From Oculina patagonica (lineage: Eukaryota): 64,000 bases of DNA. The notes beneath the pieces are model-generated. The model was not told the origin of the DNA. It saw nothing but the letters and a program-made list of their open reading frames with translations, and ran no database searches. The translations under genes and the position numbers were made by a program. Where the stretch lies: the NCBI RefSeq assembly GCF_052425735.1, contig NC_135762.1, forward strand, positions 26,350,001 to 26,414,000, given 5' to 3'. Of the stretch, positions 12,696-64,000 are shown in pieces; positions within the stretch are counted from its first letter, which is position 1; the number at the start of each line of letters is the position of its first letter.

Positions 12696-13124
12696 CCCGG
12701 GGGGGGGGGGGGGCACTCAAAAAAGTTTTATACGGGGAGGCTCCGCCCCAAGCTCTTACCCCTTACCCTTTTATATACCATTTTGACAGAAATTGTACCC
12801 CTTTCCTATACCTTTTACTGAAAAAAGGTACCCCTTTCATATACCTAAAAGACATGACATAGCCTTAGAACAGGACGTTTTCTTGTCATTTTTATGTAGC
12901 GCTTAATAAATTAAAATAATACAGCCATAAAGTGCGTCTGTTCGAAATATTTTAATTACAGGCCTTTTAAAAAACCTAAATGACGGATTTTTATACCCTT
13001 TCATATACCTAAACTTGTGAAATCGCTACCCTTTTATATACCTGAAGCCTGAAAAAGGTACCCCTTTTGTGCGGAGCCTCCCCGTATAGGCCGTTATATG
13101 GAGTACCCCCCCCCCCCCCCCGGG
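12696..13124. mobile_element. MITE with CCCGGG-poly(G) ends and 8-bp TSD (one per tandem unit)
   Basis: GAGCTCGC|CCCGGGGG...CACTC ... GAGTACCCCC...CCCGGG|GAGCTCGC. Copies at ~24825-25248, ~30937-31361 and ~37049-37471. Confidence 0.85.
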
Positions 13125-39745: not shown

Positions 39746-55459
<15,714 letters not shown>

Positions 55460-61507: not shown

Positions 61508-62800
61508 TTTATTTCATAGGTACTGAGATTTACTCACGAAAATCGTAGGGAGTAAAAATCGTACTGATTCAGAGCTTAGCCAATCAGGAGCACGAACGAC
61601 AAAATTTCACTGTGAAAAAATATCGTTCGTACAATGAGCAACGCGAACGACTAATTTTCACTGGTAATGAATGAACGTATTGAAGGAAACGTCATCCCAC
61701 AGCCGTTGCCGACAAGAAAACCCGCGCTTTGAAAAATGGCCGAGGGAAGGTTTGCTTCTGTTTCTTCAGTTGAAGAATTTATTTTAGAACAGGAAAACAA
61801 AAACACCGCTCAAAAAACTGAACGAGATGTAAAATTGCTTGAAAGATTTTTGATAACGAAGAACGAAGACAGAAAAATAGAAGATATTCCGGCTGTTAAG
61901 CTGAATGAATACATCAGCCAATTCATCATTGCCGTCCGCACCAAAGATGGAAATAAATACGAGCCGACTTCTCTTAGAAGTTTAGTGGCTAGCTTCGAAA
62001 GACATCTGAAGAAAAAGAGCTATTCTGTAAGCATAATCAACGACTTGGTGTTTGAGAAAACCAGGAAAGTTCTGCAGTCTAAACAAAAGCAGCTAAAAAA
62101 GCAAGGAAAAGGAAATAAACCGAAAGCGTCGGTAGCTTTGACAAGCGAAGAGTTGAAAATATTGTGCGAGAAGGGTTTGCTCGGTATGTGTAGTCCCGAG
62201 GCACTTCTAAACACGCTCTGGCTAAACAACACTCTTCACTTCGGACTCCGTGGGTGCCAAGAACATCGTGATATGTGCTGGGGAGTAAGCTACTGAAAAC
62301 GGCAAGCGGAGTCAAGTACTTGGAGTTCAATGAAAGACAAACAAATACTAGAACGGGATCAGACTGCAGCGATGTCAGAACCGTACCGCCGAAAATGTTT
62401 GCGACCGACGGAAAATAAATTGACTGAAATAAATTTGATTTATCTTCTTGACATAACTTTGTTATTGATGGCTTCCTTTATTAACAGACATTTGACTTAA
62501 TTAAAAAATTTTGAATGCTGCAGATCTTTGATTTACTCAGTTGTTGAGCAATTGAATGGTTTTACAGTGTCATTTATTTTTGCAAATAAATTTGTCTACT
62601 CAGTAGCACGGAAAAGAAAATCTCAGTACCTATGAAATAAACATATTACAGCATGGAAAATGCTTTGTACGATTTTAATTCACTCGTTGATACGTATCAG
62701 AAAACTCACTCGTTCGCTACGCTCACTCGTTCGTTTTCTGACACTACTCAACTCGTGAATAAAAATCGTACGCGCGCATTTTCCATGAAGTAATCTCTAT
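61508..62800 (+). mobile_element. Internally deleted Crypton-like (tyrosine recombinase) DNA transposon; left boundary approximate
   Basis: Contains a DUF3504-type ORF; 24-bp inverted repeat 61508-61531 vs 62618-62641; long terminal hairpin 62680-62758. Confidence 0.65.
61736..62418 (+). pseudogene. Crypton-type tyrosine recombinase fragment (KIAA1958/ZMYM/QRICH1-like DUF3504), frameshifted and truncated
   Basis: NKNTAQKT, F...VRTKDG.KYEPTSLRS, LQSKQKQLKKQGKGNKP, HFGLRGCQEHR. After a frameshift near 62285 it continues KLLKTASGVKYLEFNERQTNTRTG...PKMFA and then stops, before the C-terminal H-x-x-R and Tyr. Confidence 0.8.
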
Positions 62801-62862
62801 TTATACCTATATGATAATGCAAATGCGGCCTTACACTACTGAAGACCTGAAAAAAATTTTCA

Positions 62863-62935
62863 GGCTCTGAGCGGGAGTCGAACCCACGACCTTTGCGTTG
62901 CCAGTGCAATGCTCTACCACTGAGCTATCAAAGCC
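62863..62935 (-). tRNA. tRNA-like cloverleaf (anticodon GGC), repeat-borne, probably not a translational tRNA
   Basis: Reverse complement of 63181-63253. Confidence 0.4.
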
Positions 62936-63180
62936 ACATGAGAGCGGTCGTATATGGGTAATCCCTTTATGGTGGACATGATACTCGGCCCAAGTATATG
63001 TGAAAAAAGAAGTGTGTCCAGCAGTAGCAATGAAATATATATATGATAATGCAAATGCGGCCTTACACTACTGAAGACCTGAAAAAAATTTTCAGGCTCT
63101 GAGCGGGAGTCGAACCCATATATTGGGCCGAGTATCATGTCCACCATAAAGGGATTACCCATATACGACCGCTCTCATGT

Positions 63181-63253
63181 GGCTTTGATAGCTCAGTGGT
63201 AGAGCATTGCACTGGCAACGCAAAGGTCGTGGGTTCGACTCCCGCTCAGAGCC
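63181..63253 (+). tRNA. tRNA-like cloverleaf (anticodon GGC, nominally Ala), repeat-borne
   Basis: G-GCTTTGA TA GCTC AGTGGTA GAGC A TTGCA CTGGCAA CGCAA AGGTC GTGGG TTCGACT CCCGC TCAGAGC C. All stems pair except one A:C; lacks the G3:U70 Ala determinant. Confidence 0.45.
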
Positions 63254-63415
63254 TGAAAATTTTTTTCAGGTCTTCAGTAGTGTAAGGCCGCATTTGCATT
63301 ATCATATATATATTTCATTGCTACTGCTGGACACACATTCATTTATTTCACATATACTTGGGCCGAGTATCATGTCCACCATAAAGGGATTACCCATATA
63401 CGACCGCTCTCATGT

Positions 63416-63488
63416 GGCTTTGATAGCTCAGTGGTAGAGCATTGCACTGGCAACGCAAAGGTCGTGGGTTCGACTCCCGCTCAGAGCC
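63416..63488 (+). tRNA. tRNA-like cloverleaf, second direct copy
   Basis: Identical to 63181-63253. Confidence 0.4.
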
Positions 63489-63650
63489 TGAAAATTTTTT
63501 TCAGGTCTTCAGTAGTGTAAGGCCGCATTTGCATTATCATATATATATTTCATTGCTACTGCTGGACACACATTCATTTATTTCACATATACTTGGGCCG
63601 AGTATCATGTCCACCATAAAGGGATTACCCATATACGACCGCTCTCATGT

Positions 63651-63723
63651 GGCTTTGATAGCTCAGTGGTAGAGCATTGCACTGGCAACGCAAAGGTCGT
63701 GGGTTCGACTCCCGCTCAGAGCC
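63651..63723 (+). tRNA. tRNA-like cloverleaf, third direct copy
   Basis: Identical to 63181-63253. Confidence 0.4.
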
Positions 63724-64000
63724 TGAAAATTTTTTTCAGGTCTTCAGTAGTGTAAGGCCGCATTTGCATTATCATATATATATTTCATTGCTACTGCTGG
63801 ACACACATTCATTTATTTCTATTTATACCATTTTAGACATTTTTAGCGCCGAACGTTCCAGCTTCGGCACGTTTAACTTTAAGCCTAACTGAGTTTGGAG
63901 GACCAGAAGAGGAAGAAATCACAATTACAAAAGTTTGAGCTTGATATCATCGGTGAAACAAGTTGTGATTGAATCTTTTTTCCGTTAACAGGAACATTTA

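Follow-up and report, generated by a model that had tools for sequence, protein, structure and literature searches.

Animal non-LTR retrozymes and Penelope-like insertions are the described elements closest to the repeats analyzed here. They share with our elements short non-coding units (170-400 bp) that move as tandem multimers, target duplications, inverted 5' parts and a presence at many loci across chromosomes (PMC8557442; bioRxiv 10.64898/2026.07.22.740005). Retrozymes carry a hammerhead, whereas the elements described here have in the ribozyme's place a tRNA-like module and a leader complementary to the core of that module. A word search of these two sources turned up no description of tRNA modules. 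Helenus/TRIMp3 is likewise a retroelement, though not a SINE, with a tRNA-like module as Pol III promoter, where the tRNA-like sequence lies in the LTRs of non-autonomous LTR retrotransposons, also in invertebrates (PMC10886601). Helenus elements have LTRs, a primer-binding site, a polypurine tract and 4-5-bp duplications, and complementarity of the primer-binding site to their own tRNA-like part was sought and not found (PMC10886601). The elements studied here have 8-11-bp duplications, arrays of inverted and direct units, no internal region and complementarity to internal tRNA positions. An assignment to Helenus/TRIMp3 was rejected on the length of the duplications and on the lack of LTRs, primer-binding site and polypurine tract.

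Classical SINEs have no T run right after the tRNA-derived module and no leader within the mobilised unit, whereas the elements here have both. The RNA of rodent ID/BC1, a tRNA-derived SINE RNA, reportedly folds as a hairpin and by this fold avoids tRNA processing. In BC1 the tRNA-derived part itself refolds; in our elements the cloverleaf is preserved through covarying changes, and a distinct leader located upstream competes with it. Human mitochondrial tRNA-Lys is said to form an extended hairpin unless m1A9 is present. It likewise has mutually exclusive rod and cloverleaf folds of similar stability, but there the competitor lies within the tRNA and a modification decides, whereas here a flanking leader competes and transcript boundaries would decide. 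As far as we found, a separate, conserved upstream leader directed against a tRNA core has not been described previously.

We analyzed a window of 64,000 nucleotides, meaning the whole stretch of Oculina patagonica DNA under study, which contains one insertion of such an element near its right end and a solitary diverged relative elsewhere (Table 1).

Table 1 Positions of the leader, the tRNA-like module and the surrounding element in the window.
Feature	Position	Strand	Remarks
Solitary diverged relative (w40k)	40104..40225	-	Bulge-free leader ACCCACGACT-T-GCTC facing GAGC + AGGTTGTGGGT; two G.U pairs
Left copy of target-site duplication, 10 bp, TATTTATACC	62799..62808	.	Read directly; same 10-mer at 63821-63830
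One inserted element	62809..63820	.	10-bp direct repeat TATTTATACC at both ends
Inverted copy: module 62863-62934, leader blocks 62941-62965	62863..62965	-	Read from the sequence; ARAGORN, Rfam
GGGA, can pair with TCCC (63240-63243)	63151..63154	+	In the MFE structure; family A only, other families without it
Block a, ACCCA, pairs T50-T54 (TGGGT, 63230-63234)	63157..63161	+	Kept in all related families
TATA bulge between blocks a and b	63162..63165	+	0, 4 or 5 nt in other families
Block b, CGACC, pairs 45-49 (GGTCG, 63225-63229)	63166..63170	+	Two clearest compensated pairs, b1:49 and b3:47
Block c, GCTC(T), pairs D stem 3' strand (AGAGC, 63201-63205)	63171..63175	+	96.6% of cells pair
tRNA-like module, GGC at the anticodon position	63182..63253	+	Rfam RF00005, 65.9 bits, E 1.3e-13; ARAGORN 'Ala GGC'
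Hairpin CCTGAAAA / TTTTCAGG around T7 (63260-63266)	63252..63270	+	Overlaps the 3' end of the acceptor stem
Second direct leader and tRNA-like module	63386..63488	+	First copy shifted by 235
Third direct leader and tRNA-like module	63621..63723	+	First copy shifted by 470

The insertion is composed of two inverted and three direct copies of a 235-bp unit. Of the inverted copies, one stops at unit position 192 and the other is partial (114-235); the third direct copy ends at unit position 233 (BLAST layout, locus L002: -[1-192] -[114-235] +[1-235] +[1-235] +[1-233]). TRF reported a period of 235 with 3.0 copies and 99% matches. The 235-bp unit, denoted family A, was found in at least 299 copies with 97-100% identity in the 529-Mb genome. 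The copies are usually arranged head-to-head, in inverted and direct arrays, on many contigs, and target duplications of 8-11 bp flank family A arrays at six further loci. The outer ends of family A arrays (L001-L028) were located at unit position ~196 (...ATCATATATA) or ~232 (...CATTTATTT). Target duplications and outer ends at these two positions together indicate that each array was inserted whole, in a single event, much as in twin priming or with Penelope-like elements. The array ends look like the outcome of microhomology priming on a multimeric or circular template and not like a fixed RNA 3' end. As they do not coincide with the tRNA start, the leader is mobilised along with the rest of the unit. 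Both end positions are AT-rich, and AT-rich targets often adjoin them. At the palindromic inverted/direct junctions of two loci (L043 1822-1985 and L055 1620-1750), Rfam microRNA precursor models gave scores below their gathering thresholds; such junctions are likely to be called falsely as miRNAs in annotation and would form a long hairpin RNA if transcribed.

Two further classifications of the element were tested. An animal non-LTR retrozyme fits in its period of 235 and in its dispersal, but the type I hammerhead required in each unit was not found. With an Rfam library that included the type I model, neither a hammerhead nor another ribozyme was detected at E <= 1 in 62000-64000, and no ribozyme was detected at E <= 0.1 in ten loci of other families. 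A genome search with RF00008 (type III hammerhead), in which few candidates were scored, gave 0 matches. A classical tRNA-derived SINE fits in its A and B boxes but was rejected, because a 65-nt leader precedes the module within the unit, a T run follows closely after the module in all families examined, and the arrays end at ~196 or ~232 and not at a Pol III start.

The first-pass annotation of this locus had described a leader complementary, in nested order, to the core of the tRNA-like module, with the anticodon arm left as the sole side branch. Direct reading found every coordinate given for the leader and target blocks to be right and confirmed the nested arrangement on the sequence. The pairing was also borne out as excluding the D and T arms, and it excludes the acceptor stem as well. 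The three blocks sit 7-31 nt upstream of the module. Blocks b and a together face GGTCGTGGGT (63225-63234), which forms the variable loop and the 5' strand of the T stem, while block c has the sequence of the D stem 5' strand and shows no both-sided change among families. The leader is therefore the antisense of its own tRNA minus the anticodon arm (27-43), with the anticodon loop and the 3' end unmatched. Since its targets are internal tRNA positions (22-25 and 44-54), it is not a primer-binding site. The leader-core helices are present in both the MFE and the centroid structure predicted by RNAfold for the 235-nt unit.

The module resembles a tRNA closely. All four copies in the window score 65.9 bits with Rfam RF00005, which has a gathering threshold of 29 bits, and the modules of related families score 32-58 bits. 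The A-box and B-box regions, TAGCTCAGTGGTAGAGC and GGTTCGANTCC, are conserved across families and constitute a putative promoter. In the cloverleaf, 15 of 21 pairs were found to change on both sides across families, compared with 9.8 +/- 1.5 in shuffles (0/500), and all seven pairs of the acceptor stem covary. Judged by this pattern of substitution, the cloverleaf, and the acceptor stem foremost, is maintained by compensatory change. A functional cellular tRNA gene was considered and rejected: the anticodon stem has an A.C mismatch at 31:39, the anticodon position reads GGC, and there are at least 299 near-identical copies in inserted arrays with target duplications. The anticodon GGC is, to our knowledge, unusual for a eukaryotic tRNA-Ala.

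Pol III starts transcription from internal promoters and stops at T runs. In family A, a T7 run begins six bases downstream of the module, and runs of T5-T7 or longer were found in the other families examined. From this position we infer that a transcript made by Pol III from the internal promoter would contain neither the main leader nor the rest of the unit. A hairpin was observed after every tRNA-like module, with the T run in its loop or descending strand. Its stems vary while the pairing is kept (CCTGAA/TTCAGG, CTCGGAAAA/TTTTCCGAG, CTCAGA/TCTGAG, CACTGA/TCAGTG and GGGAC/GTCCC). Because the hairpin overlaps the 3' strand of the acceptor stem by 2-5 nt, it is a second flank in competition with the cloverleaf, and a structure that spans the terminator suggests that an RNA longer than the Pol III transcript matters.

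We found the three-block leader in at least 12 related active tandem families of this genome. The relatives recovered by genome searches, namely families B, C, E, F, G, H, I, J, K and K2 and dispersed D copies, have periods of ~250-310 bp. Their common layout begins with block a (ACCCA-like), a bulge of 0, 4 or 5 nt and block b (CGACC or TGACC). A 0-3-nt linker separates block b from block c (GCTC), and a spacer of varying length (7-11 nt) leads on to the module. In a block table, built as a manual alignment based on homology, the 12 active families have 159 Watson-Crick, 12 G.U and 13 mismatched cells, so that 93% pair; these families are related, and the cell counts do not equal independent events. 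Across families, block a accounts for 63 Watson-Crick, 8 G.U and 7 mismatched cells and block b for 68, 5 and 7. Alignments made with MAFFT and with covariance models misplace the bulge in several families, which makes pair counts based on these tools conservative for block a. All insertions and deletions fall in the bulge, the linker or the spacer, the noted exception being family B, in which the last base of block a is absent. By our own tally from the block table, the three blocks have 80-96% identity across families. Neither the sequence ahead of block a nor that beyond the hairpin is alignable from one family to another. Within the module, the segments targeted by the leader are the least variable parts across families.

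The retention of this layout in at least 12 related families makes selected pairing probable. As the remaining non-tRNA sequence has diverged beyond alignment, we conclude from the comparison that the leader is real and conserved and is probably under selection. The simplest reason for keeping the three blocks would be pairing with the core, since complementarity is the sole property that they have in common. Variation within family A added nothing to the comparison: no informative site was found in the leader or core among its copies, and a 239-bp subfamily has an identical leader. Public contigs whose library type is uncertain show the unit, or just its tRNA part, in related species as well, and no usable leader variation was present in these contigs, related species included.

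The main rival to a selected leader is that the blocks are the remains of an inverted partial copy of the module. Such a copy could have been made by snap-back or template jumping of the reverse transcriptase, skipping the anticodon hairpin, and would then have decayed and been inherited by descent, its pairing being functionless. The form of the leader is what this origin would leave behind: it is the antisense of a tRNA minus the anticodon arm, the dispersed D copies match at 15 of 16 bases, families E and F keep 11-12 contiguous antisense bases, and the elements routinely make inverted partial copies beside direct ones. A bulge of 4-5 nt, a 1-nt deletion and scattered mismatches are also tolerated. 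However, a neutral remnant is expected to decay like its flanks, whereas the blocks stand at 80-96% identity while the other sequence outside the module and its hairpin is unalignable. Length changes are confined to the stretches between the blocks, and family C has altered both partners of pair b3:47. We consider a functionless remnant somewhat unlikely on balance.

Covariation bears on the same choice and was found to be weak, which sits more easily with a remnant. The first-pass annotation held that the proposed fold should be given up if leader and core showed no significant covariation across families. We found both-sided change in 3 of 15 leader pairs, compared with 2.5 +/- 1.1 in shuffled alignments (235/500), a result that neither amounts to such an absence nor clearly contradicts it. 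In the same alignment, which was fitted to a model and misplaces block a in some families, 90.1% of the leader-helix cells pair as against 88.6% in shuffles, and the covariation score is 0.131 as against 0.113; both values exceed all shuffles, but the effect is small and could be produced by relatedness. The number of further pair types, 15, is close to the 15.4 of the shuffles. The test is low in power because the tRNA-side partners are almost invariant, constrained as they are by the cloverleaf and the promoter boxes.

Single pairs showed a mixed pattern. Eight families have C-G at pair b1:49, whereas E, H, F and C have U-A and G has the intermediate U.G; position 65, which pairs with 49 in the T stem, changes along with it. 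This case is weak and possibly a coincidence, because both changes are CpG transitions and the leader changed first (family G). At pair b3:47, A-U has become G-C in family C alone. Opposite position 26, the linker base makes a U-A pair in E, K, J and K2, and a C-G pair in F. Uncompensated mismatches were found in family I (two in block b), in E (A.C at position 50) and in H and C (at 44 and 26).

We compared the complementarity with that expected by chance. The family A leader binds the target 22-26 + 44-54 at -19.1 kcal/mol, compared with -11.3 +/- 2.1 kcal/mol for dinucleotide shuffles (p = 0.006), this target having been picked after the finding was seen. The same comparison beats the shuffles at p <= 0.01 in 16 of 21 representatives. 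Less specific measures gave weaker values for family A: the duplex energy against the whole tRNA has p ~0.3 with the 65-nt leader and 0.04 with the 31-nt leader, the gain in MFE from the leader has p = 0.08 in shuffles, and the z-score for folding the whole 235-nt unit (-1.58) indicates no unusual structure. Each leader paired with its own target gave a sum of -276, compared with -252 +/- 7 for permuted pairings (p ~0.0006), a swap test that is confounded by the relatedness of the families and to which we give little weight.

Controls were taken from the same genome. Its real tRNA genes (His, Tyr and Phe-like) have no anti-core leader (p 0.49-0.86), and none is clear in family L (p 0.03-0.37), a tandem tRNA-like family derived independently from an unrelated tRNA. 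The leader is therefore a conserved trait of one superfamily and not a general property of tRNA flanks; family L also means that there is no support from convergence. Recurrence in related families, together with absence upstream of real tRNA genes, is in our comparison a stronger argument than the shuffles of family A. These controls also bear on a role of the blocks in DNA. Upstream elements of tRNA genes lie in about the -7 to -31 region. The blocks occupy -7 to -31 and family A has ATATA at about -20, so they could act upstream of the module as a promoter or start-site element of Pol III (the TFIIIB region, -10 to -30) whose complementarity is incidental. We give this explanation very little credence, since chance complementarity is rare (p <= 0.01 in most families), the real tRNA genes of this genome lack such a sequence, and the TATA-like bulge is missing or different in other families.

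Folding was compared with and without the leader. The first-pass annotation had proposed that transcripts with the leader hide the tRNA shape in a rod and that leaderless transcripts expose it. RNAfold reproduced the change from cloverleaf to rod, but the effect proved to be unspecific. Without the leader, the acceptor stem of family A is predicted at 0.97 and the T arm at 0.75. With the leader, the rod helices are predicted at 0.82-0.92 and the acceptor stem at 0.00. When either state is enforced, the rod comes out ahead by 5-7 kcal/mol. Most families follow the same predicted trend, while in I, J and B2 the model pairs positions 44-53 with the leader at just 0.06-0.13. However, the predicted acceptor stem is also lost in 32-78% of trials with shuffled leaders of matched composition, which shows that the in-silico switch is not specific, and together with the whole-unit z-score this means that the thermodynamic prediction adds little. 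The cloverleaf is only marginally stable in silico, as the nearest-neighbour model ignores tRNA tertiary structure. We therefore rejected the loss of the cloverleaf in RNAfold as evidence for a switch.

A two-state RNA switch remains plausible. Complementarity, conservation in 12 families and the predicted change of fold speak for it, and the weak covariation and the disruption of the cloverleaf by shuffled leaders speak against it. As the acceptor stem is also selected and the two pairings are mutually exclusive, a two-state arrangement is reasonable. We prefer, tentatively and at somewhat less than an even chance, to read the leader as a conserved cis-antisense element of non-autonomous tandem retroelements carrying a tRNA-like module, with masking of the module set by the transcript. 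In long element RNAs that contain the leader, such as read-through, multimeric or circular templates for reverse transcription, the leader would be bound to the core, and no tRNA shape would be shown to RNase P, RNase Z or other tRNA-handling factors. Leaderless transcripts, initiated from the internal Pol III promoter a few bases ahead of the module and terminated at the T run, would fold as a tRNA. The state would thus be set by which transcript is made, and not necessarily by a ligand or by an equilibrium within a single molecule.

A further step, which we regard as improbable, is that host tRNA processing replaces the hammerhead. The leader would mask the modules in multimers, and regulated unmasking would let RNase P and RNase Z cut the RNA to unit length or release the tRNA-like part. 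In that case the leader would control a retrozyme-like cycle that has no ribozyme.

The pairing could instead serve reverse transcription, with a fold of the template or of the nascent cDNA aiding strand transfer, the formation of multimers or 5' inversions. Nearly every locus is a head-to-head inverted and direct array inserted in one event with a target duplication, and in the window the junction between inverted and direct units lies at ACCCA-TATA, a string common to the leader. However, junctions vary between loci and families and are often found in the anticodon loop. In addition, the 12 G.U pairs of the active families would be C.A mismatches in minus-strand cDNA, and they fit a plus-strand RNA better, although a mutation bias of the C-rich leader could be an alternative source of these pairs. 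We judge a role in reverse transcription to be distinctly unlikely.

Pairing in trans would also use the same complementarity. The leader could bind the leaderless Pol III RNAs of sister copies, or cellular tRNAs that share GAGC and GGTCGTGGGT, for regulation or recruitment. The target segments are the least variable of the module and there are hundreds of copies, as such pairing would favour. On the other hand, family-specific matches (family C at 47, family F at 26) favour the element's own module, in cis or in trans, over cellular tRNAs, and an internal target cannot prime reverse transcription as a primer-binding site does. Overall, pairing in trans seems to us very improbable.

If the leader-core pairing is functional, the elements would encode a means of hiding and showing a tRNA shape through transcript boundaries. 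This would bear on how mobile RNAs derived from tRNAs evade RNase P and RNase Z, and on how tandem elements of the retrozyme type can do without a ribozyme. In this genome, hundreds of 'tRNA genes' with high scores are modules of mobile elements, and tRNA gene counts will be heavily inflated as a result. The three-block leader provides a simple sequence signature that separates element modules from real tRNA genes.

Other tRNA-related repeats were observed in the genome. At least 12 distinct tandem tRNA-like families with periods of ~235-340 bp were found genome-wide, and a simple B-box pattern gave several hundred tandem pairs, compared with roughly 0-20 per strand for a reversed-pattern control. 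At G000:C8:7621784-7625784 (L112), T-arm-like motifs (GGTTCGAGTCCC...) lie densely on alternating strands with a period of ~95-190 bp. Only T-arm fragments of this cluster match Rfam, and it represents a different kind of tRNA-fragment satellite. At G000:C3:22078750-22078935 (L104), a sequence resembling tRNA-Phe(GAA), its T loop interrupted by an insertion of 31 nt, scores 53 bits with Rfam. It is paired ~305 bp apart, and a near-identical pair occurs at a second locus on the same chromosome. Within the window, a trio of 32-33-bp tandem-repeat blocks between 12766 and 37602 recurs at 12766, 24892, 31005 and 37117, which points to a direct repeat of ~6.1 kb with several copies in the window.
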